Of a stretch of 64,000 nt of DNA, positions 5,301 through 64,000 are shown piece by piece (position 1 is the stretch's first letter; every line of letters starts with the position of its first letter). The notes under the pieces were generated by a model that was not told the origin of the DNA, ran no database searches, and saw only the letters and a list, made by a program, of their open reading frames with translations. The translations under genes were made by a program, and so were the position numbers. The stretch comes from Haplodiscus bocki. Lineage: Eukaryota. Location: positions 70,184,001 through 70,248,000 of the forward strand of contig OZ296654.1 in the NCBI GenBank assembly GCA_965655095.1, given 5' to 3'.

Positions 5301-5477
5301 ATCGCAGAAAAATTTTGGACAAAAGTCGCACTCGGAATATAGTGCCAACGTAAGCATTTTTGTTTTCTCACTTAACTTTACGAAGACAGTTTTTTGTGAT
5401 GAGCGTTTCGTTTATAATTTCCATTCTTCTGGATTTAGTATAAACTTGGTTAAAATTTTGATGAAAAGATAACTTAC

Positions 5478-8618: not shown

Positions 8619-8852
8619 CTGCCGCAAGGGAGTCTTCTCTGTTGAGGATTTTGACCCAACTGACAACAGCAGGAACTATGTCGAAAATTGCCCAATTTCC
8701 AGAGGAAGTTTCTGACACGTAACAGTTGTTCATATCAGTAGAATCGTGATTGCTGTCAATAGCATTTTCTATTGAGCAATCCGGGTATGAACTTGTGTAT
8801 GCTCGTCCGGCCTCAGCACCCAGAAATCCAGATTTCACTGGCCCCTCATAAA
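8619..8852 (-). CDS. Exon: F-type lectin (fucolectin/F5-8C-like) domain 1, N-half
   Basis: TTTTCAG| acceptor and |GTAAGC donor, phase 1-1; ...NAIDSNHDSTDMNNCYVSETSSGNWAIFDI...VKILNRED, matching the F-type lectin AIDGN...C...W...INRxD pattern. Confidence 0.88.
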
Positions 8853-21940: not shown

Positions 21941-22120
21941 NNNNNNNNNNNNNNNNNNNNNNNNNNNNNNNNNNNNNNNNNNNNNNNNNNNNNNNNNNNN
22001 NNNNNNNNNNNNNNNNNNNNNNNNNNNNNNNNNNNNNNNNNNNNNNNNNNNNNNNNNNNNNNNNNNNNNNNNNNNNNNNNNNNNNNNNNNNNNNNNNNNN
22101 NNNNNNNNNNNNNNNNNNNN
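21941..22120. other. Assembly gap (180 N)
   Basis: N run. Confidence 1.
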
Positions 22121-30414: not shown

Positions 30415-30614
30415 NNNNNNNNNNNNNNNNNNNNNNNNNNNNNNNNNNNNNNNNNNNNNNNNNNNNNNNNNNNNNNNNNNNNNNNNNNNNNNNNNNNNNN
30501 NNNNNNNNNNNNNNNNNNNNNNNNNNNNNNNNNNNNNNNNNNNNNNNNNNNNNNNNNNNNNNNNNNNNNNNNNNNNNNNNNNNNNNNNNNNNNNNNNNNN
30601 NNNNNNNNNNNNNN
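30415..30614. other. Assembly gap (200 N)
   Basis: N run, near where the Gypsy 3' LTR would be expected. Confidence 1.
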
Positions 30615-35165: not shown

Positions 35166-35771
35166 CCCTTCTTCAATTAGTGGGGTTGCAGTGGTGAGAG
35201 GTGGAGATGTTGTATCTGCAGTGATTGTGATCGTTACGTGCTGCTCTGAATTTTGGATATCGGTAGGACATTTCTTGGAGCAGTTAAGGAACGGTAATGG
35301 TTCGTTCCTTGTTTGATTTCCTGGAGGGTGTTCCGTGGCGACCTCGTAGTTCTGTGGTTGGGTTCCCTTGGATGGCGGCCTTTGGCTTGCTACAGTCGTT
35401 TTTGGTGTTTCCTGAGTATAGTGTCTTGTTGAGTCATTGTTAGTATTACTTAAGTTACTTTGACCAGTAGATATCTCCGAGGGTTGCTACCAGACAATCT
35501 CGGGAATTGGTGGAAGTGTTGGTATTCCACTTGTCTCCGGTCTGTCGCATGCAGCTCCGGAGTGAAGACGTGGCGTTTCTAGTGTAAAGTTTGGGCTGCA
35601 GCTCGAGCATTCCCATCTGTGTTGCTTTGGGCAATTCTCTGTTGGACTTGGTTTTGTCCTTCCGGTCATCTATTCCGAGGAAGCGGTCTGTTCTCTGCAC
35701 TTGCTCCAAGGTAACATTTCTCTGTGGAATGGGTAGCTTTACCACAGGTCTCACAGGGTGGGTAGACAGGT

Positions 35772-37284
35772 CTAGGTCTTCTGTTTTTCGATTATTTGTT
35801 TCATTTGAGTTGATTTTGTTGGAACTTTTTTGTTGTTGGAGTTAGAGTTTGTCTGACCACCAGCGTTGTTATTGTTGTTATTCTCAGCACTGTTCGTGTT
35901 ATTTCGAGCTGGGTTTTTTTCTCGTTTGAGTTGAAGGCACTGGTTCTGACAGTGACCTGGCTTTTTGCAATGGTGGCAAGTTGGTTTGGGCTTTTCGGCG
36001 TTTTGTTGTGTGGCTTGTTGCGTCACTGTGTTTATCTGTAGTTCATCTGGGGCTTCCCAACCTTTCAGTTCTAACTCCCGTTCAAGATGAGACACAATCT
36101 GTTCTTTTGTGCCATTGTCAAAATGCGCCTGGTTGATTGATTTATTCAGGTGGGGAGGCATTTTGGCAAAAATGAGTTGCTCGATGATCGCTTGAGCGGC
36201 AACTCCGAATGCATCTTTCACTAGTTTCTGGAGTTCGTCTAGAAAATCAATTAAATTCTGGTTTGCCGGATTGAAGACCAATCGTTGAATTTTGTGTTTC
36301 GCTGTAGCCATTGACTGAGGTTTCACGTATTTTCTACGGAAAACAGTCAGAAATTCTCTCTGTTTGGGCTGGTGATGTTTTTGAATGTTTGTAACGCATC
36401 ACCACGCATGAGAGATTGGAAGTAGTTTATTTTCTCTTCTTCTGTCAGTTGATTGTAAATTTTCAGACTCGTTTGGAACTGACCTTCAAGCAGCTCAAGT
36501 TTATATGATTTTCCGTCTAATGTGGGCATAGTCGATGTGAGGGGTTTAGGCTATTCCGACATTCGGTTTTTGTTGTTCTTGAAATTGGCTGAATTACTGT
36601 TCGTCGCCAACTGTTGAGGGGCAAACAATATGTGGTCTGCTTCAATTGTCGCAGGGGTGCTTTCACTGCGAAATTGTGGCTGACTTGTGAAGCGTGCCTT
36701 TTTTTGCCCTCCTGACGAAGTTCCAAGGGAGCCGTAGGGAATCTCTTCTTGAATTCCTGTCCTGTCACAATGGGTGGGCGATTGCGAATCTCTTCCGGAC
36801 CTCCTGTCACCTTGTGAGGGCGATTGCGAAAATCTTCTGGGCCTCCTGTCAGCATGTGAGGATATTCTTCCAACTCTGAGCCAATTAGATTACCAGAGTG
36901 ATGAGAAGAGACCATCGCTTCGGGACAGGGATCGTTTGAGGAACGATCCCCATTGGGTTCCCGGTTTCCTGAGTCGCCGCCGTTCCTGGATGTTCTCGGA
37001 ACGGCTACGGAACAAGTCCGTACCTGCGGGTTCAGAAGAAATTCGTCAAGTCTGGACAGAGCACCCAAAACACGAGACTCCATCCGACTGAATTGCTGAA
37101 GTTTCTGAAGATATCGAAAAAAGAGTTTTTTAGTCACTCTCTCTTCGATCTCTTCAAAAACTTGGAAGATGTATTCTTCAGCCATTTCTGTGTCAAGCGT
37201 GTTCTGTGACTGACTGTTGCTGGTAATTTCAGGTGTTTCTCTAGAAACCGCTGCTAATTTTTTCTTATTCCTCAAAGTTGCCAT
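35772..37284 (-). pseudogene. gag: Gypsy gag (frameshifted), N-terminus starting inside the LTR
   Basis: MATLRNKKK... start at 37284; capsid-like KINYFQSLMRGDALQTF; zinc knuckle CHHCKKPGHCQNQC. Confidence 0.88.
36759..36860 (-). repeat. 42-bp tandem repeat holding three LTR-end/PBS-like motifs (CA|TGGTGACAGGAG consensus)
   Basis: Copies at 36854-36843, 36812-36801 and 36770-36759; translated in frame as PHMLTGGPEDFRNR-PHKVTGGPEEIRNR-PPIVTG. Confidence 0.85.
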
Positions 37285-37728
37285 GATACTGAGGGAAAAG
37301 TTTTGTCAGCAGTGAAGACTGAATTGAAGGTTTTACCATTATAATCAACAGTGAAGATCTCCTCTAATTGTGAGGGGAAAAGGGTTTCAATAATAAGCGA
37401 ACAGTTTAAGATCAAATCTAGTACAATACCGTAAAGCTACAATTTATATAATAATGATCGTACTTTCGTTTCTCCTATTTATACCATTCCTTTGCGGGAA
37501 ACATAACTGTTTACACGCCAAATCAAGGTACAAATAGGGTCAAGTTCTTTAATCGTATTATCTATAAGGGGAAAAATGCTGACTTTGGTGGGAAATAAAC
37601 ACCTCTTCGTCCATTTCTTCATTCACGGACTGCGTTTTTTCCACCTTCGACAGAAAAAGTACGGGTGCAATACGTCAGAAATTGACATCAAAGTGGTTAT
37701 TCCCGCGCCGACACAATAAATACTAACA
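36855..37728 (-). repeat. 5' LTR of the Gypsy element (874 bp)
   Basis: TGTTAGTAT...ATCCTCACA (TG..CA, 7/9 terminal inverted match), followed directly by PBS-like TGCTGACAGGAG. No second LTR is available to confirm. Confidence 0.7.
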
Positions 37729-38611
37729 TAATTGAAAGATGGAAAAAGTTTTCCAAAACAGGAAATTAAAAAAGATGCACTGAAAAAAAAATTGAAATAC
37801 ATGAAATAAAGTTCTAATAAAATCTAGAAACATTCATGTTTACTTGTGGTGACATACTGCATTGATTAAATCCACTGTTGTGAACAAAACTAGGCTTTCT
37901 CTAGTCCGTTGCACGTTTCTATCAGCTCACGCCTCATTTTCGCAGGAGCGTTCCGGAGCGACTACGTAGCCGCTTGTAGCACTGCTCTCCGCAGTGCTAC
38001 TGAAGAGAATGAATCGGGTGGCTACGTACCGTTCCGTGTCCGTCCAAAGTGAAACAGCATAGTTGCACAGCGGATTGGCTGAAACTCTAATGACGTGACC
38101 AGATCAGTCACGACGTAACATTTACAGAACAAATGTTCACATTTAAAGTCACGCTCTGCAATAATTTTTGATTGTTATTGAAAACTTGTTGAAACTGTCA
38201 GTCTAGATAAGTTACTGGACAAATCATTTAAATGTGGATTTATATATTACTTATTTGGATTAATTATATAGAATAGCAACTTATATTATTAAAAAAATAC
38301 AGTAGGGAAGTAAATGAATATCCGTTTGCTCCGTACCTGTTCCGTCCCAATCAGGATCAATTCACCAGAATTACACGTATCGGATACGTGCCTTTTACAT
38401 CAATCACATATTATGGAACGATACGTAACTACTACGTATCGTTTACATGAAATACTTATTAGTGCACAAGCTGGATACGTAACTACTACGGATCCTTGAT
38501 TAAATCTGATGCGCTATGTCTTTAAATAATATTTTTCAGTCTTGAGTTTTTAGTTTATTGACGACGCGCCTGGTATGTCCTTCGGCTCAGGGAGCAATTG
38601 TCCACAAGCCT

Positions 38612-38666
38612 CGCAGATGTGCTGCGACAGCTGCATGTCGCGACATTTGCGCTTACGGAATACTAG
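38612..38666 (+). mobile_element. Possible Helitron 3' terminus
   Basis: GC-rich hairpin CGCAGATGT..GCGACA/TGTCGC.ACATTTGCG, 11 nt, then CTAG|T. Confidence 0.4.
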
Positions 38667-40152
38667 TGAACAAATACTGCTGATTGAACCAGGGTACCAC
38701 GAATGCTGCTGTTTGAACAGGTGAACAGATACTTAATCAACTAAATTATTTATTACACCTTTAATTCTTTATAGGAGCGGCTATTTCAGTTGATTTGTTT
38801 AATTCAGAACAAGCGGCACATTGGGAAAAAGCCACGTTAACAAAGTGTTGCAACAGAGCGAGAACGCAAGAACAAATTCTCAGAACATCAGAATACAGTA
38901 TCAAAAGCAACTTGTGAGCAGTTCAGAAAAAAAGTGGCAGAAGCATGTGATGAAACATTTCTGCTTAAAACAATTCCCGCGGTATTTCCAGAAAGTCGGT
39001 TCAACACTATCCATGAAAACTGGGGAACATCTGTCGAAATTTTTAGAGAATTGTCCAAAATCATCAAGAGTGAAGTACTACCTGCCTAAAAAACTGAAAC
39101 TTGCCGCATTGCTCTATCAAATCAGTCCTCTGCTCATTTGTGAAGACTGGAAACTTCTTCAATTGCAGAAAGCTTTGGAAAGTTCTTTTAAATGAGAAAA
39201 AAACGATGCATCTGAAAATTTTAATTGAAAACCCATACCAAACAAAAGCGCCAGAAGATGCAAGGAGATTCTTTTATAGCATAGAGAGTACAAATTTTAC
39301 GTACAGTAAGCTTGAAATTTTTGGTGCAGCAGAATCTTCCTCTTAACTATATCTACTGCAAATGCAACACTAGCTATTTTGGTTTACTCGATAGCATAAA
39401 AACGCGATTTAGGCAATCTAAAATCCCCAAAAAACTCCACAAGATCTATAGTCTCTGCCAACTTAAAAATTTCTTGATTGGACAGTTTAAACACGCTCTC
39501 CAAAGTTGATAGTGGAGTCAGAATTGCCGCAAACAGAAAATTGAGGAACTAGATTTATTTGGCATAGTTTAAAACGCTAAGAACACCAATTTTTGACCGA
39601 CCGTTTCAAAACCTGGGGAACTTCCTCCGAAAACAACGTTTTCGGCTGATTTATGCTGCATGCTCTGTTGAACAGATCATTCTGAAGCCAAAAACAAAAA
39701 TTACAAGACATATAGCTGCTTTTATCTATATATTTAAAGTTTTTGTGATTTTTCCCAAAAATGTCGAAAACTCAATTTTTTCGCCAGCAATAATATTGTC
39801 AAATGCTGTAGGATAGCTTTACTGGGGTGCGGAAAAAAGCAAGAAAAGGCGCAAATTGTTCACATTGGCTTCCAAAGGTAAAAAAAATCAGCGAAATTTT
39901 CGAAGCGTTACAATTTGTAATGTTAATATGCCCATTTGGAATTTCTGAGCTATTAGTCAAAAACTTAGGGAACATTCAATGTGGAGTAAAGTACTCACAT
40001 TTTTTTGAACTGGAAAACATCTTTTTTCTACAAAGCTCAGAAAAAAAGAAAGATCGACAAAGGGGGCAAAATTTTTCTGGAGATGGGATTCAAAGAGAAG
40101 GTTCTGGTAAACGAGTGCATGTAGCTTTTTTGCGCACTAGTTCAAATCGTAC

Positions 40153-40493
40153 CTGAATTCGGCTAGATTCATCTCAATAACATCTTGTGCGAGTTGTGAA
40201 TGATACGATAAAAAATGCAGAGGTACCGTATCATGCTTGCGGTTTGCCAGCCTGAAACAGAAGCCAAGGAAGATGCATGATGGTGGCACGCCAACAGAAG
40301 TAAGCTCTTTGATACCTGAAAACACAAGTAACGACAAAAACGAGGGCAGCAAAACTTCGGGGATTCTCCTAGAGTATGAAAAACACATGTTTTCCTCACT
40401 TTCAGAAGGTTTGATTAATGCTACCCAAACATGCTGATTCAGTTCAGAAGCCGTTTCTGAATTCATCTTAACTCCCTTTAGCAAAGACTTTCT
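40153..40493 (-). CDS. Candidate orphan coding exon (113 codons), product unknown
   Basis: Strong T-tract-CAG acceptor, AG|GTACG donor, open frame throughout; partner exons not found. Confidence 0.4.
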
Positions 40494-43400
40494 CTGAAAA
40501 AAAAATGAATGGATTCAGGGAAAACTCAGAAAGAAAACAAACATGAAGTTCTTGCGAGTTTTTAAAAACACATGTCAGATATTTCACGCCAAAAAAACTA
40601 CGAAAGGAGAATCATAAACGCGGAGTAGAATATATTTTCCACTCGGTGAGTAATTCATATGGCAAAAGGAAGTTGCTAATCGATTTGTATCCCTCAAAAA
40701 AAGAATGTCCGATATGAAAGGCAATTGAAAACAATTTCGAATTCTCAATCATAAATTTTAGTTATATGCAAAGAAGAGTAAACACCTTGCCATTACTGCT
40801 GTTTACCGAAAAAATCCGCGTTGCAAGTGTTTTAGTGTTTTAAAATGTCGCCAGATGCTCAAAATCCAGCACAGTCCTTCACATTGACAGATTTGAAAAC
40901 AATCAACTCTAAGTTTTCTGATTTTCGAAATACAAGTGGATTTAAATTACACAAAATTGTCAAAAATAGTCACTATCACTTGGAAGTTTCAGTCAGTGAT
41001 TCGAAACCATCCTCAGACTCACTGGATTTTAGTATTCAGAGATAATATTTCAAAACTTAGGTTTTTCACCATAATTTTTGCCATTTTTCCTTTTTGTTGT
41101 TAAAAATGCTCCCCAAAGACCGCTTTTGAATCCAAAGAAGAAGGAAACAGGCTATTCGTTGCCGCATAACTTTTTTTCGCGGGCGGCATGAACACGCAAT
41201 GCTTCAGAAAGAGAAAGCTTGATGCAAAATGCAAAGAGAAAGCTTCATTTTAACAATTCTACTTTAAGAGAAGATTTTTGACCAAAAGCCGATCCAATTT
41301 ACAATTTGTCCCAATAAAAATGACTCAATAGTTTCAAGCAAAAGGTTTCAGATCGATTTTTTTTTGGAAATGATGATGGTAACTGAGCAATATATAGTGT
41401 TGATATGACGTTGCAAACTTGATTTTTCTGAGTAAAATAGTTTTTTCGGGTGTTTTCCCACAAAAAGAAACATTTTGACGGCTGATTTCTAAAAATTGGC
41501 TTTTCCTTTTTCATGCTAAAGGTAATAAATTGACGCAAAAAAAAAGAAAATTTTCGAAGTCAAGAATGGGTTCAGGAACAATTGCGCTATTATGCAATAG
41601 CATATTTTGAACGATATAACAAAAACAACGCGGTTCATCCCTAAAAAGTTGGCGGTTTTTCAGCTCAAGAAAATGACTTTTCTCTCAAACACGAAGATAG
41701 AACGCCTATAAATGCCTAAACAAATGTGCTCTACATAGATTAAACTTTTAATTAAGCTCTCACTGAATGAAATGGGAAGGCTAGTCTTTTAGAAAATAAT
41801 TGAATGCCGACAACAATCATCATATCGTTTTGGTACTCGTGATCAGAGTTTTTGAACATTGATTTTGAAAAACAGTCTGTGTTACAAGACTTGTGCCATA
41901 TTTATAAATAATTTCCAATGAATCCCTCATTGATTGAAATTCGAAAAGTAGTCATAGAAAAACAATTCTGAAAATCGAATATGTGATCGCCAGCGCCCAT
42001 GATGATATTTTCGGTTAACTTTGATGACTATTCTTTTCAAAAATGAGGTCGAGGTCTTCGACATGAGTTATCTTCGATAAAATTGACTTTTGACCAAGCG
42101 TTTGATGAGCAAAATCGGATCTGTAGTTACAAAAATTTTGACACGACGCAACGTAGATGGTTCGCAAAACATGCTGACCAAAAAATCAAACGATGCAAAA
42201 TCATGAAATTTGCAAAGTGTTTTTGAAAAACCGTAGATCCTGAAAATTATTTGATACCACGAACTTAAACGAAAGTGACATTCTTAGAATTACAATGGCA
42301 ACTGTAAGTCAACTGTTTGCTTAAAAAAACTATAAAATTAGAAGACCCATAAGAAACAACCCAAATATTTCGACTTTGCAGCTCTTGCTGACATTGGCAA
42401 CTTTTTCGGTAAAACAAATCAAGACAACTGGAATATTTGAACAAAATTGTCGTCACTTTCAGGTTTGTTTTGAGATCCAGAGTTGTCAGTTCTGATGATT
42501 GACAGGCAGCATGGATAATTTGAGAATTTCACCGCTTTTTTTACTAACATCGGCTATTTTGGTCACCTAGCAGAGACAAGTTCATGCCACACTGTCTAAT
42601 ACTCAAAAATTTGTTCTGTTAATCATGCATTTTCGAGTCGCACCTTTCAACATCGTAATGTTTAAGGAAAACGCTTCTAAGAACGCAATAACAGGCACCT
42701 GCAAATGTCTCAGAAGGCCATCATTGACTGTGTACACAAGACATTCTTACGACGTCAAAAACAGCAAGTTTGGAACGAGAAAAAAATCGGTTGCATTCTC
42801 TAATACACTCTGAAATTTCATTTAAGTATGCGCAGAATTTGATTTTTTTCCCAAGATCTTTTCTGTGACTCTTAGTTTTTTCAATAGACCTTTGAGAAGC
42901 TCTGAATCTGCATGTTTTTGTATTGATTGGAAGCGTCTAATCAGAATACAAATATAGATTGAGCTTCGGAAGTAAAAGTTGATTGGTAGCCACTGGAAAT
43001 CAGCTATATCGATGATAGCTATCCATCGTTGTTTCGCTACCCCACATGAGTTTTTTTTAAATTGGATGCCCCAGATTGGTTCCACGTGACCTTTTCCACG
43101 TGAAACTGGATTGTAGTCAATCATTGTCGACTTTTCGTGATTTTATCCTTTTCTCAAAATTGAAATCGAACACCCGAAATCTATTGTACGACACTTTTTC
43201 TAGAACATTCAGCTTTTGATTTAACAGTAATAATCAAAATTGGATTGAAAGGCACTGAGATGACCAATTTTTTAGAATTCTGAAAATTGACAGAAATTGA
43301 ATTTTGTATCACTTGTTTGAAAAGCTACCAATTGATTCGAATGGAACTTCCACGGACCGAAATACTGTAGAAACAGGCAAAGATTACATTTGGATTGTTA

Positions 43401-44600
43401 CCGATCTGAGCAGTTGCCCGAAATGAACTAAATAAAAGCTAATCAAGAGGTGAAATTATCAAAAGTCGAAATACAAAGGAATTTGGTAACCCTCTAGCCG
43501 CTGTACACGCCACCACTTTAGTTCACCATCAAATGTAATTTTAGCTCAACACTTAAAGACTTATTATTGAGCGACAAGCACGTGAAGATTAACACATCAC
43601 TGATGCCAATGTGTATGTTATCAGTTCCACATTTGCAAGGCTTGAAAAAATAACGTACACGACCTCGTTCGAGTAACATCTTTGCATTCGATATTAAAAA
43701 TGAATTTGTCTTTGGGAAGTTCCGCACTTCACAAAAATTAGCTTTAGTTCTTCCATTGCAGTTATTTTTCCTTATTTCAATCTAGCTACGATTGCAATAT
43801 CCACAATCACTTTATTGAGCGACAGCAAGTGCGGATTGCTAAATGTCTTTTTGAAGTTCAGTCTATCTCCGTAACAAAATAACCAATACAGGCAGACAGC
43901 GCAATGGTAATACCAGCGTTGGAACGTCCGCCAACCAAGACAAGTTCGCTCTATGTGTGAGTCAATTAATCTCTAACTGCAGTGGTTTAAGTGCAAGGCC
44001 AATCGAAGAAAGCCGAAAGGCTAGAAATAGTATTTTACTTCAATGAACGCCCTAGTTTTCGTGCTGCTTTTCAGTACTTCCGGAATTGTAGAAACTGACA
44101 AAGAAGCGTTGTCTGTTCATAACATTGTATGCAACCCATTCAATGTAATCCGATTTCATTTCTACGAACGTTATTGCCATTATTTCTTTCTTCGTGCTAT
44201 TTATTACAAACTGGTAACATTCAGAAGTATTTCTTCCCACGATACAAAATTTTAACTCCAGGGGTTCCTCCTGGAAGAACAGCATTTTCGTACTTACTTT
44301 CGCTATCATTTTTACCACGCGTTTTTCAATTCTCCGAAACAATGACGCAAATTTGCCGTACTCGAGCTTGTAGGTACACATATCTTCGGCTCTTCCGCAG
44401 AAAAGATTTTTTACCAGCAGAATTTTTGAACTCAGCAGGAGATTTAGTACAAGAAAGATCATTTTGACATCATCATAATAATTGTGATCAATTTCAACAC
44501 AGAGGCGAAGCTGTGCTTCGCAACACTTGCGCAAACGGAATACAATTAAGAAATGCTATATTTCATTCCTTTGATATTTCAAATAAAAAATGCATGAATA

Positions 44601-44770
44601 AGCGTCAATCGCAATTAGTTGAGCAATGCGACTGGGACGCTAAAGGGCTAATGTTCGAGACCAGGACACTCCCTTCTCTTTGTTCCCGATCCTTTCACAA
44701 CTCGAATTTGTTCTAGACTGTGATCAAAATCCGCAGAAGCCTGTGATATGACTCTAGTTTGCAGCCAACT
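44601..44770 (+). mobile_element. tRNA-derived SINE, older copy of the same family
   Basis: Decayed B box GTTCGAGACC, then GACACTC..TTCTCTT...AAAATCC.CAGAA.CCT shared with the 58279 copy. Confidence 0.5.
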
Positions 44771-45367
44771 AATTAAGCAACACATCGCTTAACAAATACA
44801 TCGGATAGAGTCGGGAACCGGCAAATCACGAGCCGATGGATTACAATTCACACTCAGTGCTACCAATTTTTATAATTTTGCGCAAGTGTAACTATCTTTT
44901 GAGTACTGCATGAATTGAATGTAGTAGTAGTACATGTACATGGATCAAAAATAAACAGGTAAACATGGTTTTTGATAATTGCGCAATTAATAATTTCGAA
45001 GAGCTTTTTCAAAGGGAGGCGGCGAAGAGGAGGAAGAGTGGGGTGGGGTTTGCGACGCATATTTAGTTAATGTCTACAGATCAATAAGTACAAGGAGGTG
45101 TTATATCTCTCAATCATAACAGGTACATGACGCAGATGTATAATGGTCATAGACGAGAATCAGTTTTTGTGAAGGTGTTTTTCACACAACTCAATGGGTC
45201 ATTCCAGTATGACGAAAGATTTCTAATATGGTGAAAAAAACCAACAAATTGAGAGCCACAAAAAGGCAGACGAATAAAAGTGACTTCATGCAACATTGAA
45301 CATTTATTCAATAGCTAAGATGAATGAAACGATATAAGTTTTCTTTTGAAAGTTAACAATTTGAAAG

Positions 45368-45744
45368 GAAAACGAACAACAGCCAGTTTTTGTTCTCTGA
45401 AAGTTTGACATTTTTGCCGAGTAAGCGCCAGTAAAATGAGCAGCAGCACTTCTAGTCCTTTTCCATTTATTCGGTACCCTTGCCGGAAGAGAAGCACAAT
45501 CTCAAGGTCAGTTTCCGGCCAGCTGAAACATAACTAACTTAACATTCCAGCTGTGGATTTCTTATATACGGTTGGAAATTGGGTCCAGATTCATTTCGCC
45601 ACAATAGTTTTAAAGAAATAGAAATGAATCTTTTCGTTTTTTTATTACGATAAAATTGGAAGGTGAAAGTGTCAAATCACTGGAAACAGTGTTGCATGAC
45701 TTCAAAACCGAAGTAGACATTTGATCCAAAGTTCAAAGGTTAAA
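45368..45744 (+). repeat. Direct duplication, copy 1 (377 bp), abutting the left terminus of the giant-TIR element
   Basis: GAAAACGAACAACAGCC...TTCAAAGGTTAAA, roughly 95% identical by eye to 54064-54442. Confidence 0.95.
45467..45522 (-). CDS. HNRNPL: hnRNP L terminal coding exon, distal copy (SGRKLTLRLCFSSGKGTE*)
   Basis: TTTCAG| acceptor, phase 1; TLRLCFS matches the conserved TLKLCFS C-terminus; continues into a 3' flank with AATAAA at 45303-45308 (minus). Confidence 0.85.
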
Positions 45745-48666
45745 AGCAGTATAGAAAGGGGTTTCAAAGCCACTTATGAATCCTTCCATATTCGGAAGTG
45801 CCGTTAGAGCCACTTATTGCTCCTCAACCTTAATACGTTACCAACTCCTAGTTTAACCTTATGACAGCTTTGACAGCTTATCTAGTTAAACCTTTTGACA
45901 GCTTTGACAACTGTTTGAATACATACAAATAGAAGTGCTAAGGGCATAAATGGACGAAAATAGTCAAGTATGCAAAATTAATCTACAAGATATGCTCTAC
46001 ATGCAAGGCCGCGGGTCCTTGAAAAAGAAGTTCCCATGCCTAAACTCGAGTAAAAAGCAAACAAACGCGTGGCCGAGCCCAAAAAGCATATTTACAAACA
46101 TTCGAACATTAGTCTCATATTGCCGAAAACCAAAGGCTTCCTGAAAATTCCGTTCTTCCGCAAACTCGCATCAAAAAGGTGTTTTATAACCTCCGAACTT
46201 GACAGAGCATTTGATGAACATATTTGGGCTAACCCAAAGCCACATTTGAAAACAATCAAGCGTTAGTTGCAAGAAGCCAAAACCAAATTAATTTTGAAAT
46301 CGTTGTTCATTCGCAACGAGATCGGTTTTGTATCTCCGAATTCCACTAAGTTTTCATGAACAGTCTGTGCGAGCCCATTTACAATATTCAAAAGCAAGGA
46401 AAAGCTTATGGAGTAAATCTGAAGACAAAAAAGCGCTTTCTGAAAATGTCGTTCTTTCACAATTCACGGGGAAAATGTAGTTTCTTCAAATTTTCCTTAT
46501 TCCACGTAAAAATTGATGTGAAAGTTTCAGTGAGTCCAAAAAAAAACATTTGAAAAGAAAAAAGCGTTAACTTCTCTGAGCCAAAAAGATCATTGCTTTC
46601 TGAAAAAAAATCAAAAGATGCTTGCACACCTTCGAACATTAAACTAAAGTAACATTGAATTAAAAAACTGACATTAAAAAAAGGTTCGGCGATCTCGGAA
46701 CCATATTATATTAACAGTTAAAAGCTCGCCGGGCAATGCCGAGAACACGAATACTGTCCATAATCAGGTTCCTTTGCAAATTGACGTCGAGAAAATTATA
46801 ATCTTCCCTCACATTTCGATTTAACATTTGATGTAAAAGTTTGGCATTCTCAGAAACCGTATTTGAGAACAAAACAACATTCGTCGCGCAGTGGCGAAAT
46901 CGAAAGCACTTTCTAGAAAGATCGTGCCTTATAGGACAGGATCGTTGTCCTTCCTTCGCAAAATCACATCAAATACGATACATTATATTCTTTGAATTGA
47001 ATTATTATTTTGGTAACAGCACTGTTTGAGACCATTTATCATACTTGAATATAAGTAAACGTTTGGGCAAGGCCGAAAACAAAATTATTTTTTTGAACAG
47101 ATCGTTCCTTTGGCAAATTCACATCAAAGAAGTTGCTATTACTTTTCCGACTTCATTTTAACATTTGATGAAAATCTTCCAGTGAGTCCAGAAACCACAT
47201 TTGAAAACAAGTGAGCGTTAGTTGCACAAGCCAGAGAAAAAAACGACTTTCTGAAAAGATCACCCAGTCGCAAATTCAAATCGAAAACGGTGCTTTTACA
47301 CCTCCGACCTCAACTAAAAATAAATGAACGACATTCGGCGATCTCAAAGCCACCCTTGAAAACAATACAAAGTTCATTGAACAAGTCTGGAAAAAAAACT
47401 CTTTTCTGAAAAAATTGTTCCTCCGCAAATGACTTCAAAAACGATGTTTTGATTTCTCTAAACCAACCAAAGTTCTGATTAAGGGTCCGCGTGTGCCGAA
47501 ATACCATTTTTAAACACAATTAAACGTTCACTGAGCAGTGTCAAAAAATTTTTTTCCGAAAAGGTTGTTCCTTCCCGAATTCACTTCGGAAAAAACGGTA
47601 TTACTCCTGAGAACTTGACAAAAAATCTCATGGCCATGAACATAAACCACTTTTGAAAACATGCAAGCCTCTATTGCACGACACGAAAAGTTATTTTCTG
47701 TACATGTTGTTCTTCCGCAAATTCACATCGAAAAAGATGATTTTTCTTTTTCCAATTCAACTAAACCTGTGATGTACAAGTCTGTGCGAGCTCATGAACA
47801 ATATTCAAAAACAATTAAACCTCAGTGTCACAATGCTGAAAAGCATAAGCATTTCCGGAAAGGACGTTTTTCCACAAAACCGAGTAAAAAAAGTCGTTTG
47901 CACCTCGAACCTCAAGTCAACATTTGATACAAATGCTTGCGCGATCCTAAAAACCCTATTTGATAATTTGAAACCAAATTCACCTTCGTCGCGTAAAACC
48001 AAAAACAAAACTTTCTGAAAATGTCAATTCTGTTCTGGTTCCCTTTGGAAAAGAGCGTTGTCTGATGGAAGAGGCTTTCCAAATTTCGCATAAAAACTGG
48101 AGTTCAAATTTCCGAGCAACAAAGAAATCAAAAATTTTGTTTTTATTTAGCCAGCTTGCAACAACAATAGTTGAACTCGATACCGGAAAAAAAAACAAAT
48201 GATTTGCAGTGCTTGGTGAGCCTAAAACCGTTTCTGAAGCAATTAGACGTTTTTTTGCTTTTGCTGGAAACAGAAATTTTTAACTTGAGTTGGCGAAGAT
48301 CCGGGAGTGTCAATGAACATCGAAACCTACAGACACGGTTACCTTATGTATGGTGGTTCATTCCAATTACCATGGCAACATGCGGCATTTTTTTTCAGTA
48401 AATTAACGAACCACGATTTTTCAAAAGATACTGTTGTTTGCAGGGATAACAGACGACCTACTGAATTGAAAAACCTCAAACTTTCCGGCTTGAAAGGCCT
48501 CTGAAACGTTCCACAGCCACTATTCTAATTAACAAGACGATGCAAGCTTTAGGCAATGCCACGAGTGGATCGTTTGAAACTTAGTATGGGACGGCTTGTG
48601 CGAGACTTTGAGCTGCAGTGCATAAAAGTCATGAGCAATCTAATATTCCCTCGACAGCCTCCGGTT
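45745..48666 (+). repeat. Left terminal inverted repeat (2.9 kb), largely a degenerate ~155-bp tandem array
   Basis: Reverse complement of 51610-54047 (mirror ORFs such as MQASIARHEK... and MCLKMVFRH... appear in the ORF track); ~470 bp after the first 15 bp have no counterpart in the right arm. Confidence 0.95.
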
Positions 48667-48668
48667 CT

Positions 48669-48738
48669 GCCCTGACTCCTGATTGCAGGGTCGAGAGCGT
48701 GGGCTCACGCTCTCGGCACTGCAATGAGGAGTTAGGGC
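48669..48738. other. 70-bp GC-rich imperfect palindrome at the inner TIR boundary
   Basis: GCCCTGACTCCTGATTGCAGGGTCGAGAGCGTGGG|CTCACGCTCTCGGCACTGCAATGAGGAGTTAGGGC: 30 of 35 positions are Watson-Crick symmetric, no indels. Confidence 0.95.
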
Positions 48739-49730
48739 CGTTTCGTTGCTGTTGGTTGGTGCTCCGAGGATGAAACGAGATTGTTGGTGCGGTTGGTGGC
48801 GATTTCGAAGCAAAACTGACGGTGCCATGTTTTGATAGGGTTGAAGGAGACCAATAAACAGCCAAAATAGGAATAAGAGAACCATTTCCTTGCCTCAGAA
48901 AGGCACGCACGCGATTTAGCAATTGAAAACAACAAAGGTAAAGCAACCGAAGAAATGCATTGTCTCGGCGATTTTGCCACCTCACACATCCCATCATCAA
49001 AAAGTTACGAAGCTCTCAATTTCCAATGAAAAACTGTGTGATACCGCTCCCAAAAGTATTTCCACTGGTGAAAATAATTTGGATTCGCTTTAGATTCATT
49101 ATCAAAAGCTTCACAAATCCGTGAAAAAATTGAAAGTGATGGCATTGTCCCAGATGATACGTAAGTGACATTTGGTGGAACTTAGCTGCTCGCATACGAC
49201 AGTTACTGTCGGAAGACAATAAAACCATTTCCAAATCTAGAAAACTTAAGTTGTGGGTTCCGTTTTTTGTTAACAAACACTTCATACAGACGCGATGCAG
49301 AGCTAGCACTAAGACAATGCACGACGGTGAACAGATAACGGCCATCAAAGACAGAAAACTTGCACAACATCGAAAACCAAATTCGCTTACCGACAAGAGC
49401 GAGGGTAAATTTTTGAAAAGTACTAGATTCAAAAGTTTTACTGCATTGAAATGGTCAACGAAAAAACTGAACATGTGCAGGATTTGACGCTGATCATTTT
49501 TTGTCGATACCGCATGTTCTTGCGGGGAACGGCGAATCAAAGTCGAAAAGTTTTCAATTTACCACTCTCGGATGACCACAATTCGAATGACTTCAAAAGC
49601 ATCTTGACCCTTCTGCCAATGTGGAGGTAATTGAAATACGCATAGCCATTTGTGACTCTTGCCTGGCGAACAATGCCGTCTTCAATGAACTCAGGAGCCA
49701 TAATGATCGGTTGAAAACTACATATTTGTG
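48732..49730 (-). pseudogene. Decayed cargo ORF of unknown function in the element spacer
   Basis: Protein-like frame with scattered stops (FQKFTLALVGKRIWF...YFHQWKYFWERYH...LPLLFSIAKSR...KRP*) ending inside the palindrome. Confidence 0.35.
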
Positions 49731-51609
49731 GGGAAGAATCGTTTCAATTTCTACTCTTAGGCTGTTTGTCATGTTTTAAAGAACGGAAAAAAAGTATATA
49801 TAAATCACTGAAGATCTCTAGTTCCCCAACCAAATTCTCCTGAAAGTCTTTTCATCAATCCCAAAGATGACCCAATAGATATTTCTGTTGAACTGAAGAA
49901 CTTCCCTCGTTAATGTTCTTTATTGAGTTTGTGCTTCATTTTTGCGATTCAATAGCTTCACACGGATAAACTTGAGATGTAGTTTCTTTGGGAAGAGAAT
50001 TGACGAACATCTTCTTTGAAACATAATACGTCGCTTTTGAAAACAATTTCCAAAACATAGAGACTTTGAATAATGTTGGTGTAAGAGTTTGTGGGCGCTT
50101 TTCACTTTTACTGAAAACAGCCGACTGAAACAATTGATATCATTTGTGACATTTGTCCGCAACGAAATTATGCATTTTTCGAGTTTAATCTACCTTATAG
50201 CATCCTTCTCCAGTGGATTGGTGCAATCAAAAAGCAAGGCGCATAAATGGAAGAGAAATTCCATGTAAATGCTTTTACTATATCGATCGCGGTACTACAT
50301 GCTTTGCTGACATTCCATCCTTCCTCTCCAAACTAAGTGAAACTTTGTGAAGCATTATCCGGTGGTTTGATTTAATAAAAGAAGGAACCAAGCAAGCGGT
50401 TCCAAAAATTTCCTTGAGATGCTTCAACTACCTATATCAATCGCAGTACTCCGATCTGTCGTGGCATTCCATACACATACTTGTTAAGATCATTGAGTCT
50501 TTTTTCACGTTTTTTTTGGTGGCCGAGCAGCGATGAAATGCAAACTTGGCGCAGTTCCGATCCCAATTCTGAAACGCGATTCCACAATTATCTACGGGAG
50601 TGTGCCAAGTGTGCTTGATTACAAAGCTTGTCAAGAATCATTGTTTCCATTTTTTGGATTTTTCATTCTTGGATTTCGGAAATCGAAATTGATATTCTTG
50701 ATGCATATCCAAAGGATGAACTGATGTTGCCTGTTTGTGAGAGTAAGATAGTCCCAATTTATTGAACTGAGAAAACAAACTGTAAAAATCTCAACGGCGT
50801 CGGAAATCAAAATGCTACTGAAAGCCGAGTGATAACGATGAGCCTCTATCGTAAGGACTACGGGGCAGCTGTTTTACGCTCAAGCACTAGTGCTATATAA
50901 CCTACTTAGTCCCAAGACACACATATAATATTCCACAGACGAGCAAAAGCAGGCAAAATTACTTGAAATTTATGTACCCACCGATACAACGCATCTGGGA
51001 AAGTTTCTTCGTTACATTATGGCAACTTGGTTTCGTACAAGTTCAGAGTTATCATTCTTAGAGCGTTTGTGTTAAGTTGCAGGAACGAAGTTGCTTTCAA
51101 ACAAGTTGCATTCTTTCGGACTGACAGCACAATTGAAGCTGATTTTGTAGCGCCAAGGGTGAAAGACTTTCAAACATTCTCTGTTTGTTTCGAGTGCGTG
51201 AAATAAACACATTAGGATGCTTTCTTTCACGGAGAATACCAATATAAAACTTCACAATCAAGTCAGCAAACGAATAACTTTGTGAAGCCTGTGTCGCCCA
51301 GTAGAATGGACTGCTCTTCATGTCAAGGCGCTGTAGTTCAGAGGTTGGCAAAGGGCGTCGCACACTAATCGTCAAAAGATCCATTCGCTGCATTGCCTAA
51401 AAGTTTGCATAGCCCTTTGTTATCCACTGAAATGCAGCGTTTTTTGAAAGTTTCTCAGGTTTTACAAATTATAAAACAATTTGTTACCCTCGACGACCGC
51501 AATCCATCTCACAAGCGTCAAATCAAAAATAGGCCTGCTTACTTTTACAAAGATTACCAATGTATAATTTGATTTAAAAAGTTTAGTTTTCCAAGACATG
51601 AAAGCGTGA

Positions 51610-54047
51610 AACCGTAGGCTGCCGGAAGAATATTAAATTGCTCATGATTTTTATGCACTGCAGCTCAAAGTCTGGCAAAAGCCATTGCATACTAAGTTTC
51701 AAACGATCCACTCGTGGCATTGCCTAAAGCCTGCATCGTCTTGTTATTTAGAATGGTGGCTTTTGAACGTTTCAGAGGCTTTTCAAGCCGGAAAGTTTGA
51801 GGTTTTTCAATTCAGTAGGTCGTCTGTTATCCCTGCAAACAATAGTATCTTTTCAAAAATCGAGGTTCGTTAATTTACTGAAAAAAATGCCGCATATTGC
51901 CATGGTAAGTGGAATGAACCACCATACATAAGGTACCCGTGTCTGTAGGGTTCGATGTTCATTGACACTCCCGGATCTTCGCCAACTCAAGTTAGAAACT
52001 GCTGTTTCCAGCAAAAGCAACAAAACGTCTAATTGCTTCAGAAACGGTTTTAGGCTCACCAAGCATTGCAAATCATTTGTTTTTTTCTGGTATCGAGTTC
52101 AACTATTGTTGTTGCAAGCTGGCTAAAAAAAAGCAAAACTTTTGATTTCCTTGTTGCACGGAAAATTGAACTCCTTCTTTAAAGTGAAACTTGGAAAGCC
52201 TATTCTATCAGACAACGATCTTTTCCAAAGGGAACCAGAACAGAATTGACATTTTCAGAAAGTTTTGTTTTTGGTTTTACGCGACAAAGGTGAATTTGGT
52301 TTCAAATTATCAAATAGGGTTTTTAGGATCGCGCAAGCATTTGTATCAAATGTTGACTTGAGGTTCGAGGTGCAAACGACTTTTTTTTACTCGGTTTTGT
52401 GGAAAAACGTCCTTTCCGGAAATGCTTATGCTTTTCAGCATTGTGACACTGAGGTTTAATTGTTTTTGAATATTGTTCATGAGCTCGCACAGACTTGTAC
52501 ATCACAGGTTTAGTTGAATTGGAAAAAGAAAAATCATCTTTTTCGATGTGAATTTGCGGAAGAACAACATGTACAGAAAATAACTTTTCGTGTCGTGCAA
52601 TAGAGGCTTGCATGTTTTCAAAAGTGGTTTATGTTCATGGCCATGAGATTTTTTGTCAAGTTCTCAGGAGTAATACCGTTTTTTCCGAAGTGAATTCGGG
52701 AAGGAACAACCTTTTCGGAAAAAAATTTTTTGACACTGCTCAGTGAACGTTTAATTGTGTTTAAAAATGGTATTTCGGCACACGCGGACCCTTAATCAGA
52801 ACTTTGGTTGGTTTAGAGAAATCAAAACATCGTTTTTGAAGTCATTTGCGGAGGAACAATTTTTTCAGAAAAGAGTTTTTTTTCCAGACTTGTTCAATGA
52901 ACTTTGTATTGTTTTCAAGGGTGGCTTTGAGATCGCCGAATGTCGTTCATTTATTATTAGTTGAGTTCGGAGGTGTAAAAGCACCGTTTTCGATTTGAAT
53001 TTGATCTTTTCAGACAGTCGTTTTGTTCTCGGGCTTGTGCAACTAACGCTTGATTGTTTTCAAATGTGGTTTGTGGACTCGCTGGAAGATTTTCATCAAA
53101 TGTTAAAATGAAGTCGGAAAAGTAATAGCAACTTCTTTGATGTGAATTTGCCTAAGGAATGATCTGTTCAAAAAATAATTTTGTTTTCGGCCTTGCCCGA
53201 ACGTTTACTTAGATTCAAGTATGATAATTCGGCTCGAACAGTCCTGTTACCAAAAAAATAATTCAATTCAAAGAATATAATGTATCGTGTTAGATGTGGT
53301 TTTGCGAAGGAAGGACAACGACCTTGTCATATAAGCGACGATCTTTCCAGAAAGTGCTTTCGATTTCGCCACTGCTCGACGAATGTTGTTTTGTTCTCAA
53401 ATACGGTTTCTGAGAATGCCAAACTTTTACATCAAATGTTAAATCGAAATGTGAGGGAAGATTATAATTTTCCCGACGTCAATTTGCAAAGAAACCTGAT
53501 TATGGACAGTATCCGTGCTCTCGGCATTGCCCTGCGAGCTTTAACTGTTAACATAATATGGTTCCGAGATCGCTGAACTTTGTTTTAATGTCAGTTTTTT
53601 AATTCAATGTTACTTTAGTTTAATGTTCGAAGGTGTGCAAGCATCTTTTGATTTTTTTTCAGAAAGCAATGATCTTTTTGGCTCAGAGAAGTTAACGCTT
53701 TTTTCTTTTCAAATGTTTTTTTTGGACTCACTGAAACTTTCACATCAATTTTTACGTGGAATAAGGAAAATTTGAAGAAACTACATTTTCCCCGTGAATT
53801 GTGAAAGAACGACATTTTCAGAAAGCGCTTTTTTGTCTTCAGATTTGCTCAATAAGCTTTTCCTTGCTTTTGAATATTGTACATGGGCTCGCACAGACTG
53901 TTCATGAAAACTTAGTGGAATTCGGAGATACAAAACCGATCTCGTTGCGAATGAACAACGATTTCAAAATGAATTTGGTTTTGGCTTCTTGCAACTAACG
54001 CTTGATTGTTTTCAAATGTGGCTTTGGGTTAGCCTTCCTATACTACT
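51610..54047 (-). repeat. Right terminal inverted repeat (2.4 kb)
   Basis: Inverse of the left arm from CAGCCTnCGGTT (inner end) to ACTACT (outer end). Confidence 0.95.
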
Positions 54048-54063
54048 TTCTCCTGTTCGATAT

Positions 54064-54442
54064 GAAAACGAACAACAGCCATTTTTTGTTCTGTGAAAGT
54101 TTGACTACATTTTTGCCGAGTGAGCGCCAGTAAAAAGAGCAGCAGCACTTCTAGTCCTTTTCCATTTATTCGGTACCCTTGCCGGAAGAGAAGCACAATC
54201 TCGAGGTCAGTTTCCGGCCAGCTGAAATATAACTAACTTAACATTTCATCGTGGATTCCTTATATACGGTTGGCAATTGGGTCCAGATTCATTTCGCCCC
54301 AATGGTTTTATAGAAATAGAAATGAATCTTTTCGTTTTTTTATTACGATAAAATTGGAAGGTGAAAGTGTCAAATCACTGGAAACAGTGTTTCATGACTT
54401 CACAACCGGAGTAGCCATTTGATCCAAAGTTCAAAGGTTAAA
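54064..54442 (+). repeat. Direct duplication, copy 2 (379 bp), 16 bp from the right terminus of the element
   Basis: Same start and end sequence as 45368-45744; about 17 substitutions and 2 small indels. Confidence 0.95.
54166..54221 (-). CDS. HNRNPL: hnRNP L terminal coding exon, proximal duplicate (SGRKLTSRLCFSSGKGTE*)
   Basis: Intact TTTCAG| acceptor and stop; single coding difference TTG>TCG (L>S) at 54203; shared 3' flank ends ~100 nt after the stop, just before the TIR element. Confidence 0.7.
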
Positions 54443-55536: not shown

Positions 55537-55635
55537 AGGAATCAGGAATCAAAGTGTGATTGGCTAGAATTAATGCATCGGTCGCTTCTGTGATAGAATT
55601 GAACACTACATTGGCAGCGGTTTTCTTTGCTTCTT
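55537..55635 (-). CDS. HNRNPL: hnRNP L-family penultimate exon (RRM4)
   Basis: TTTTAG| and |GTTAGT, phase 1-1; EEAKKTAANVVFNSITEATDALILANHTLIPD, equivalent to human SSGLLEWESKSDALETLGFLNHYQM. Confidence 0.88.
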
Positions 55636-58487: not shown

Positions 58488-58771
58488 CTTTATACTTGCT
58501 CTCCATGAAGGAGACGTATTGGGGCACAGGGGCTTCAGCATCTTCGAAAGCTTTCATCACTGCATCTTCAGTGGTGCCAGCTGGCATGTTGAAAGCGTGC
58601 AGAGTCTTTTTCGGGTTCTGGAAGCGGTTTTTGGCTTTTTCGTTTGCAGTGCTAAACCGTTGATCCCGACTGGTGGTGAAGTTCACGAAATAGGGTTCCC
58701 CGTTAGGCATTTTAGCAGCATCAGCTGGCTGCACGCGTGTATTCTCAAACAACTCCTGTTGCTTCGAGAGT
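58488..58771 (-). CDS. HNRNPL: hnRNP L-family exon (RRM3-4 linker and RRM4)
   Basis: TTGCAG| and |GTTAGT, phase 2-1; LSKQ...FTTSRDQRFSTANEKAKNRFQNPKKTLHAFNMP vs human VSKQ...FSESRNNRFSTPEQAAKNRIQHPSNVLHFFNAP. Confidence 0.93.
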
Positions 58772-61644: not shown

Positions 61645-61766
61645 TTCGGTGTCAATTTCTTGCCAAAGCATTCCAAAGAAGGAAGCACTGACATAATTTT
61701 GGACCCAGCTTCCGCGCCTTGCATCTCAACCATCGCAGATCCCGGTTTGCTCTTCAGAAATTTGAT
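61645..61766 (-). CDS. HNRNPL: hnRNP L-family exon (RRM3)
   Basis: TTTTAG| and |GTTAGT, phase 0-2; IKFLKSKPGSAMVEM...FGKKL vs human VKFMKSKPGAAMVEM...FGQKL. Confidence 0.93.
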
Positions 61767-62336: not shown

Positions 62337-62544
62337 CTTATTGACGTTACCGAATATACAGAGCAGGTTGAACAGTTTTTGTGGTCCAAACTTATCTTCG
62401 TCCAAGTTGTGAATCATGAGCACACTAGGAGCATAGTCGTGACCTTCTACTGCCGAACTGGAACCAGCAGCATACGCTCCTGACCCTCGACCATAGGCCA
62501 CCAAACCTCCTGGTCCGATGTCATCGATTGGTACGTAAAAGGCT
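62337..62544 (-). CDS. HNRNPL: hnRNP L-family exon (Gly-rich linker and start of RRM3)
   Basis: TTTCAG| and |GTCAGT; ...PSVLMIHNLDEDKFGPQKLFNLLCIFGNVNK vs recalled human SPVLMVYGLDQSKMNCDRVFNVFCLYGNVEK. Confidence 0.9.
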
Positions 62545-64000
62545 CTGAAATAAACGAATCATATTTAGAGAGCACTAATGCACGCTCAAGTCCGATCTTT
62601 TTGCAAATAATGAAAAAACTTTCTGGAATCTTTTCATTTGTTTCAACTGCTCATTAATTAAAAAGATTGCTTTCAATTAAAAAGTTGCAAACCATTGCAG
62701 TTAGTTTTTTCACCGCGTAAAGAACACTCTTAGCAATCTAAAGGCTCGTCCTTCCTGTCCAATGTTGTCTACTGTGTGACGCAGCTGGTGGCATGCTAGT
62801 GGCAGTAAGAACTACAATATTAGCGATGGTCAGCGCTGCGCATAATGGCTTACTAAGCCTCATATGCAGCTGTCTATATCTGGTACCCAGACACAGCACT
62901 ATACATACAAGACAATGAAAATTAGATTTTCTGCGCCACGGAAAATGGGTCCAGGCAAAAAGCCGCGTATAACCACCAACCAAAACCATACAAATTTTCT
63001 TGAAAACATCAAAGGGTCCTCCTTAGGAAGTTTCACGGCAATAAGTAAAACCCCCTTTTACACTGAATTTTCTGAAAATTTTTCCAAGCATGAAGGACTC
63101 CCCTTTCAATATGTACCGTTCTCGGCATGTTTTCAAAATCATTCTCAATCTGGGAGATGAGTCACGGTTACTCTGGTGTCCTTTAAAAAGTCATCTTCAT
63201 GTTTACCAAACATTTCGCATTAAGTTATGCGTTTACTTTACCTTGCTTAAAATATGGTAACATGAGAGAAAACCTCCAACGAAACATAACACTGTTTCCA
63301 CCCCTCAATGCTTCCCATATTATTTTGCAAAAAAGGAAATACTTCAAATCGGAGACCAATTTTCTTGAACAACTTCGTTTTCTGATATATTACGACCTGA
63401 GTTCCCTTCAAAAAGTACTTCCACATAATTACGAGCAGCTTAGGACTAACATTTCGAAATGCTCAATTGGAACCTTTTTCAAGACCATTAGAGGTTTTTG
63501 AAAATGAGGTCAAATAGAAATTATACTTACTCATGCTCCAAACCAGAAGGCGCTCCTCTTCCTAAAACCAAATGCAATGTGTAGACATAAATTTTTCAGG
63601 GTCTCCCCACTAACTATTCAAAGTTTTCAGCTTCGATTTCTAGAAGGTCTTGATCAGGGTACATCCAAAAAACTCACTTCATTTAATTTCTCGACTTTGT
63701 CCGACAAACCATTCAGCAAAAAAATAATATCGAAAAACTTCTGTAAATTAATTTGTGAACTGCCTATTCAAAGATGTCAATGACCGGATTCGCAGAAACC
63801 TTTGATAAACCAACAGAAACTAGCAAAAATGTTGAGCTGATGAGTATTATCTTTTCCAAAAAGATCTCCTTATTGGGCGTGAACTTCTTACTTGATAATC
63901 TGCTTTGAATCAAACAAACGCTTACAACTGTATTCTTCCTTTTCTCCATTTATGTTGACGAAAATTCGGCCTTCGAAATCTGATCCAGTTTTGAAAATCA

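Follow-up and report, generated by a model that had tools for sequence, protein, structure and literature searches.

The 64-kb stretch of Haplodiscus bocki DNA analyzed here (contig OZ296654.1 of assembly GCA_965655095.1, positions 70,184,001 to 70,248,000; the whole stretch is referred to as the window) carries part of an acoel hnRNP L-like gene whose 3' end is present twice, with the two copies flanking one foldback-type DNA transposon (element E). We consider it fairly probable that this arrangement is a genuine, old micro-duplication that arose around the transposon, in which the copy distal to the last splice donor (copy A) serves as the functional terminal exon and the copy proximal to that donor (copy B) is a competing exon or a decoy. 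All coordinates are window positions, and the gene lies on the minus strand.

A repeat search of the window identified two collinear direct-repeat blocks, 8.7 kb apart, with no comparable pair elsewhere in the 64 kb. BLAST and full alignment extended these blocks to a unit of ~385 bp with 93.8% identity over 388 columns (E = 1e-170), and the ~95% identical repeats at 45368-45744 and 54064-54442 that had been reported by an earlier, sequence-only reading of this DNA proved to be real and to represent the high-identity core of the longer repeat. As that reading had also described, each copy holds the 3' end of the intron (~221 to 222 nt), an intact TTTCAG acceptor, the full last coding segment (56 nt), and ~100 nt (~108 nt by our alignment) of 3' untranslated region (3' UTR). 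The copies differ by 20 mismatches and 2 small indels in total (a divergence of ~5 to 6%), of which 12 mismatches and a 1- to 2-nt indel (2 gap columns) fall in the intron part (~222 nt), 7 mismatches and a 3-nt indel (3 gap columns) fall in the 3' flank (~108 nt), and a single mismatch falls in the 56 coding nucleotides. The remaining sequence details listed by the sequence-only reading were likewise found at the positions it gave.

The sequence between the copies, where the sequence-only reading had placed a transposon, appears to be a member of a foldback-type DNA transposon family with copies elsewhere in the genome. Its terminal 15-mers, AGCAGTATAGAAAGG and AGTAGTATAGGAAGG, are inverted relative to each other, lie exactly at the junctions, and are the only two matches to this motif in the window, which contains element-related sequence from one element only. 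The two inverted arms are 2.4 kb long and 95.6% identical over 2,442 columns, and a repeat search resolved families of sub-repeats within them, spaced ~150 or 300 bp apart; Tandem Repeats Finder reported nothing in the element because the sub-repeats, only 60 to 89% alike, have diverged too far. The right arm has undergone an internal deletion of a 466-bp segment (45760-46226 in the left arm), since other family copies contain it. No Pfam domain was detected in the six open reading frames (ORFs) of the element that were scanned. Within the arms, a tract of 622 nt (47271-47892 and 52382-53003) is 100% complementary, with the remainder at 92 to 98%, and a contig of a second assembly (see below) differs from the right arm of the window at 52933 and 52968. 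This perfect match may reflect gene conversion, heterozygosity, or polishing cross-talk in one assembly.

The identification of the gene as hnRNP L, proposed earlier, is borne out by structural and database matches. Exon 3 matched the human hnRNP L RRM3-4 structures in a PDB search (E ~3e-9), Pfam RRM_5 and RRM_10 were found on the homologues, and the closest named relative in a full library scan is a protein named by NCBI as heterogeneous nuclear ribonucleoprotein L-like from the acoel Convolutriloba macropyga. This relative sets aside an insect source for the DNA, which its base composition had suggested. A spliced transcript of another acoel (Logan ERR1719414; L008, translated as P0140) maps to 62540-62333, 61768-61645, 58767-58488, and 55637-55539, and its end aligns to both repeat copies. 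The refined splice model comprises four exons (e1, ending at 62337; e2, 61766-61645; e3, 58771-58488; and e4, 55635-55537) followed by a last segment at either 54221-54166 or 45522-45467, the frame being open either way and the predicted protein being 79% identical to P0140. All four donors in the window (55535, 58487, 61644, and 62336) read GTTAGT. On this basis the gene is an intact hnRNP L-like gene with an RRM3-RRM4 tandem and the LCFS-type C-terminal strand of that family. Related acoel proteins are 244 to 257 amino acids (aa) long and begin with a Met just before RRM3, where this locus (minus strand, 62470-62560) reads TTG GTG and has no ATG. Given the open frame, the acceptor (tttcag) at ~62547, and the missing ATG, the gene probably continues upstream of the exon at 62337-62546, and it may encode a longer (four-RRM?) protein or use another start.

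Two intact terminal-exon copies, each with an acceptor, frame, and stop codon of its own, are present as had been claimed. Both acceptors read tttcag/CTGGCC, and in the frame of the exon 4 donor both copies encode the peptide (S)GRKLT[L/S]RLCFSSGKGTE before the stop. The sole coding difference is 45504 A (TTG, Leu) in distal copy A versus 54203 G (TCG, Ser) in proximal copy B. In the orthologues, this residue is Met or Val. Among 146 homologues ending in x-X-[KR]-[LIV]-C-[FY]-[SA], where X is the residue tabulated, X is Met in 91, Leu in 30, Phe in 20, Val in 2, Ile in 2, and Thr in 1, and it is never Ser. The Leu-to-Ser change that the sequence-only reading had noted in the proximal copy therefore falls at a conserved position of the RRM4 strand, hydrophobic in 145 of the 146 homologues.

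The poly(A) signals differ between the copies as that reading had indicated, the downstream AATAAA (45303) being absent after the proximal copy and an AATAAA overlapping the stop codon being kept in both. After copy A, a good AATAAA with a GT-rich tract occurs at +161, outside the repeat; after copy B, the next hexamer is an ATTAAA at +544, inside the element. The 3' UTR of the related acoel transcript is at least 151 nt long, exceeding the 108 nt held within the repeat, and it has no stop-overlapping hexamer, which suggests that the +161 signal, kept only by copy A, was probably the ancestral poly(A) site. The match between the tail of the orthologue 3' UTR and the region downstream of copy A is marginal, its score being reached by 18 of 500 shuffles. 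When changes were polarized with the orthologue 3' UTR, a C-to-T change and a 3-nt deletion were derived in copy A; in the coding part, Ser is the derived state and belongs to copy B. This pattern fits an old duplication.

Copy A is predicted to be the functional terminal exon, since it encodes the canonical Leu and is alone in being followed by a canonical downstream poly(A) signal. Copy B would then be a decoy, competing, or minor alternative terminal exon; transcripts that end in it could encode an RRM4 with Ser in place of Leu and carry a 3' UTR that is either very short or derived from the element. If copy A is the functional exon, the last intron would have grown from ~1.3 kb, the distance from the donor to copy B, to ~10 kb, the distance from the donor to copy A.

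Several observations weigh against this assignment of roles. The acceptors do not differ in quality, and transcription reaches the proximal one first; together with the 30 nt upstream of each they are nearly identical, so the sequence offers no apparent reason for the spliceosome to prefer either. Since the stop-overlapping AATAAA is also present in both copies, copy B could be the main terminal exon. In addition, neutral change at the ~5.5% seen elsewhere would put ~3 differences in the 56 coding nt, and the one observed is not significantly fewer; selection on either copy is not demonstrable.

We regard as unlikely, though worth weighing, that both exons are used as a working alternative-last-exon switch, with RRM4 isoforms carrying Leu or Ser, different 3' UTRs, or both. 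It would account for the retention of the acceptor, the frame, and the stop-overlapping AATAAA in both copies after ~5% divergence, but preservation of the 56 nt is statistically indistinguishable from neutrality, and Ser at this buried hydrophobic position is without precedent among the 146 homologues. Moreover, no transcripts or proteins of Haplodiscus bocki were present in the collections searched, in which the Convolutriloba protein and a 525-aa-anchored alignment, used as queries, returned matches from other species only (the nearest being the Logan ERR1719414 contig, at 79% identity), and CA-rich hnRNP L-type motif clusters showed no enrichment near either acceptor, giving no hint of hnRNP L autoregulation. 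Usage of the two exons might perhaps also be modulated by a hairpin that the 2.4-kb arms of the element could form in the pre-mRNA. In a fuller version of this idea, to which we give very little weight, the arms (95.6% complementary) would fold so that the two acceptors are brought within ~1 kb of each other and isoform choice is set. Folding would, on the same slender premise, loop out 8 kb once transcription has passed the proximal copy, and formation, unwinding, or editing of the hairpin would conceivably decide between the Ser/short-3' UTR isoform and the canonical Leu isoform.

A duplication of this kind could also be produced by assembly, if haplotypes or a collapsed repeat had been mis-joined and each chromosome in fact carried one terminal exon. 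We compared the window with a second reconstruction of the locus, ENA assembly ERZ26859043, whose contig names resemble metaMDBG output and in which each flank of the locus is a single contig. Contig ctg88014 (339.7 kb, 64.6x) covers the window from 64000 down to 46989, including copy B, the filler beside it, the right arm, the center, and part of the left arm, and contig ctg53765 (14.7 kb, 48.7x) covers 32821-45751, including copy A and the first 7 nt of the element. These contigs differ from the window at 4 to 12 positions over 11 to 16 kb each, with no difference in either repeat copy. Because the copies are 5 to 6% apart and the two assemblies diverge by only ~0.03 to 0.1%, copies A and B are old paralogues rather than two alleles joined by mistake, and the haplotype-join artefact that the sequence-only reading had named as a worry is unlikely.

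Two features of the assemblies temper this conclusion. The ENA contigs stop at 45751 and 46989, so that 45752-46988 is not spanned and the link between copy A and the element rests on the assembly of the window plus 7 bp, and the two assemblies may share reads. No third ENA contig bridging 45752-46988 was found in searches with the ORFs at 44129-44464 and 45950-46141. Those breaks, together with the unequal coverages of the two contigs (48.7x versus 64.6x), are what favors an artefact, but the last 7 nt of the copy A contig belong to the element terminus, and there is no run of N between 45300 and 54500. Three contigs of ERZ26859043 (ctg53765, ctg88014, and ctg74603) stop at or inside foldback copies (at 45751, at 46989, and at the end of family copy L009, respectively), and since a break also occurs inside L009, the breaks look like a general difficulty with these foldback repeats. 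Taken with the low divergence between assemblies, these points make an artefact highly improbable. Coverage was considered as a ploidy test and set aside, as contigs ranged from 29x to 85x, too scattered to interpret.

The junctions constrain how the duplication may have formed. The left junction is exact (45744/45745, ...GGTTAAA/AGCAG...), in agreement with the earlier statement that the first copy ends directly before the left terminus of the element, and copy B continues seamlessly into the upstream intron. At the right junction, an 8-bp filler, TTCTCCTG, which the sequence-only reading had not mentioned, separates the element from copy B; it has no second match in the window and resembles neither the element family nor the outer module of copy L010 of that family. 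The 6 nt beside the right end of the element read TTCTCC and those that precede copy A read TAACAA, with no match between them. An extension of the repeat to the right end of the element via a 12-bp gap (TTTCTTTTG versus TTTCTCCTG) was tried and was not significant. A target-site duplication would be expected to have the short length typical of the family and to abut both termini of the element. Here the repeat is ~385 bp, compared with 6 bp at family copy L004, and 8 unmatched bp lie at the right junction. Because of the filler and this length, the flanking repeat is best described as a micro-duplication associated with a transposon and including a complete terminal exon, and not as a true target-site duplication.

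The literal giant target-site duplication to which the sequence-only reading had likened the repeat, in which the element ends would be joined to strands ~385 nt apart and fill-in would duplicate the interval, does not agree well with these junctions. Suggested settings are a replication fork or uncoordinated single-end integration; the repeat abuts the left terminus exactly, and the divergences of the repeat (~5.5%) and of the arms (~4.4%) are compatible with one event. However, the right junction carries the filler, L004 has a 6-bp duplication, the three family copies with comparable flanks have no long repeat, and arm divergence is alike in other copies and thus a poor clock. We consider this origin improbable.

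Unequal recombination between staggered insertions, the mechanism favored by the sequence-only reading, also fails at the right junction. Two insertions of the same element ~385 bp apart, followed by unequal exchange, or alternatively sister-chromatid ends inserting ~385 bp away, would give exactly the repeat-element-repeat topology observed (with a reciprocal deletion as the other product), near-palindromic foldback elements would provide long homology for exchange, and transposon-driven duplications of flanking sequence are documented in maize (PMC3744419). Yet homology should then reach the right end of the element, where instead 8 bp are unmatched and TTCTCC faces TAACAA. It is also improbable a priori that the element would insert twice, independently, within 385 bp, and the maize reversed-ends route would be expected to leave an element at the start of each unit, where only one element is present. 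Overall, we regard this pair of routes as rather unlikely.

We therefore tentatively prefer an ordinary insertion followed by repair synthesis at a broken element end, without holding it to be established over the others. The element would first have inserted normally at the intron position 45744/45745, with a 6-bp duplication, GTTAAA. Later, breakage at the right end of the element, for example by one-ended transposase cleavage, would have left a 3' end with the right-hand GTTAAA that could anneal to the left-hand GTTAAA copy on the sister or the same molecule. Primed synthesis would then have copied ~380 nt of adjacent gene sequence before dissociation, and the new end would have been end-joined to the element, leaving the 8-nt filler. 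The appeal of this scheme is that it explains the exact left junction, the seamless copy B, the filler, and the single element in one event. Weighing against it, it is one of several models that fit, and a 6-bp target-site duplication is known from a single intact family copy. It is also a remote possibility that the repeat-element-repeat structure reflects an insertion or repair mode specific to foldback elements, which duplicates hundreds of base pairs of target. The features of the locus are listed in Table 1.

Table 1. Annotated features of the hnRNP L-like locus and of the foldback element (window coordinates)
Feature	Position	Strand	Basis or remark
Repeat copy A, distal to donor	45360..45744	-	Repeat search, alignment, BLAST; identical in ENA ctg53765
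Repeat copy B, proximal to donor	54056..54442	-	Repeat search, alignment, BLAST; identical in ENA ctg88014
Terminal coding segment, copy A (...GRKLTLRLCFSSGKGTE-stop)	45467..45522	-	Leu (TTG, 45504 A); acceptor AG 45524-45523
Terminal coding segment, copy B (...GRKLTSRLCFSSGKGTE-stop)	54166..54221	-	Ser (TCG, 54203 G); acceptor AG 54223-54222
Canonical AATAAA, 161 nt past the copy A stop	45303..45308	-	Outside the repeat; only downstream of the distal copy
Coding exon 4, RRM4	55537..55635	-	Donor GT 55536-55535; transcript map and splice model
Coding exon 3, RRM3-RRM4 linker and RRM4 start	58488..58771	-	PDB match, transcript map, splice model
Coding exon 2	61645..61766	-	Transcript map and splice model
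Coding exon, RRM3 start	62337..62546	-	Transcript map and splice model; acceptor ~62547, open frame
Element E, 8.3-kb noncoding foldback-type transposon (putative)	45745..54047		Terminal 15-mers, arms, family copies
Left terminus AGCAGTATAGAAAGG	45745..45759	+	Same motif ends copies L007 and L010
Sub-terminal segment, 466 bp, left arm only	45760..46226		Arm alignment; found in other family copies
Left inverted arm, diverged ~150-bp sub-repeats	46227..48666		Arm alignment, repeat search
Central spacer, 2.9 kb, without recognizable coding capacity	48667..51609		ORF and Pfam scan
Right inverted arm	51610..54034		Arm alignment, repeat search
Right terminus AGTAGTATAGGAAGG	54033..54047	-	Terminal 15-mer match
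8-bp filler TTCTCCTG	54048..54055		No homology to element family or to sequence before copy A

Relatives of an ORF from the arm, 68 to 87% identical, occur on other contigs of ERZ26859043, and the five other family loci that we fetched, on five other contigs, are 82 to 87% identical to the element, with the same kind of termini (AGTAGTA...) and varied architecture. These copies document a dispersed, multicopy family. Copy L004 is 11.7 kb long with arms of ~4.9 kb and is flanked by a 6-bp direct repeat, GAAAGC, when its termini are taken as AGTAGTA...; L010 has no recognizable target-site duplication. None of the three copies with comparable flanks (L004, L007, and L010) has a long flanking repeat, and only the copy in the window has one. 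The remaining two, L006 and L009, are incomplete, being truncated or interrupted by the end of a contig.

Copy L007 is a nearly perfect palindrome of 10.7 kb (L007:9236-19919) in which the sequence corresponding to the center of the window element is inverted-duplicated around a spacer of ~325 nt, suggesting that the arms of this family grow by inverted duplication. In L010 (L010:2974-16757), the inverted repeat runs ~840 bp past the usual terminal motif, two copies of which lie 514 bp apart, and the outer 1,153 nt of the arms are 100% identical; its left arm contains an inserted LINE at 4127-8694, with an endonuclease and reverse transcriptase ORF and a (CAA)n tail. Next to the L006 family copy, at L006:1-2512, lie a gene with a MATH/TRAF domain and an ORF that contains a Monjiviricetes_fusion glycoprotein domain and may represent an endogenous viral element.

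Elsewhere in the window, runs of N occupy 21941-22120 (180 nt) and 30415-30614 (200 nt). Contig ctg53765 (14,704 bp) would begin at ~31047, a few hundred base pairs from the second run, so both assemblies struggle there. Downstream of the gene, at ~33500-37300 on the minus strand, is a GC-richer, strongly AT-skewed block with several ORFs of 130 to 275 aa, one of which (~33525-33920) has a sub-threshold match to RVT_1 (E = 2e-4). This block is probably a decayed retroelement.

What the locus signifies depends on which exons are used. If both copies are used, transposon-associated repair would have made an alternative terminal exon of a splicing regulator in one step, with a buried RRM4 residue and the 3' UTR altered by the new exon. 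With use of the distal copy alone, it would offer a natural experiment on how the splicing machinery passes over a nearer 3' splice site that is perfect yet lacks a proper poly(A) signal. Either way, it would represent a clean, datable case of a class II element duplicating several hundred base pairs of flanking gene sequence, from a phylum, Xenacoelomorpha, in which mobile elements have received little description. For the present, the locus is of interest as a structural footnote, and its status as a regulatory device is hypothetical.

The element compares most closely with foldback transposons such as Drosophila FB, Galileo/Kepler/Newton of the P superfamily (PMC10990002), and the Mutator/Foldback element Tm1 of root-knot nematodes (PMC3169594). 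It shares with them very long inverted arms of diverged ~150-bp sub-repeats, a short noncoding center, arm length that varies between copies, many dispersed copies, and an association with local rearrangement. It is unlike them in that a Pfam scan found no transposase in the ORFs of the element and in that its host is an acoel. Target-site duplications are 9 bp for FB and 7 bp for Galileo, and the AGYAGTA... termini of this family, together with its single 6-bp duplication, are unlike either.

As a duplication, the locus may be set beside those produced by reversed-ends or alternative transposition in maize, in which the order is element-repeat-element-repeat and the new junction has an 8-bp duplication; examples in the maize genome are 116 to 1,262 bp long and 93 to 99% identical (PMC3744419). 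The resemblance lies in small direct duplications tied to a class II element and in one junction that lacks a matching target-site duplication. The present locus differs in having a single element between the repeats, instead of one per unit, and a filler at one junction.

At the protein level, the gene has the RRM3-RRM4 tandem of human hnRNP L and hnRNP LL (PDB entries 3TO8, 3S01, and 2MQQ), with Pfam RRM_5 and RRM_10, and the C-terminal strand x-hydrophobic-[KR]-L-C-[FY]-S of hnRNP L. Unlike hnRNP L, the named acoel relatives are 244 to 257 aa long with two RRMs, and only the RRM3-4 half of the present gene lies within the window. The terminal exons differ from known alternative last exons of animals in being near-identical to each other, in lacking a conserved downstream poly(A) signal at the proximal copy, and in being predicted from the sequence. 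Nevertheless, like duplicated terminal exons in animals, they follow one another as last exons, both carry a 3' splice site along with a poly(A)-type hexamer, and, as with animal alternative last exons, the choice between them would change both the C terminus of the protein and the 3' UTR.

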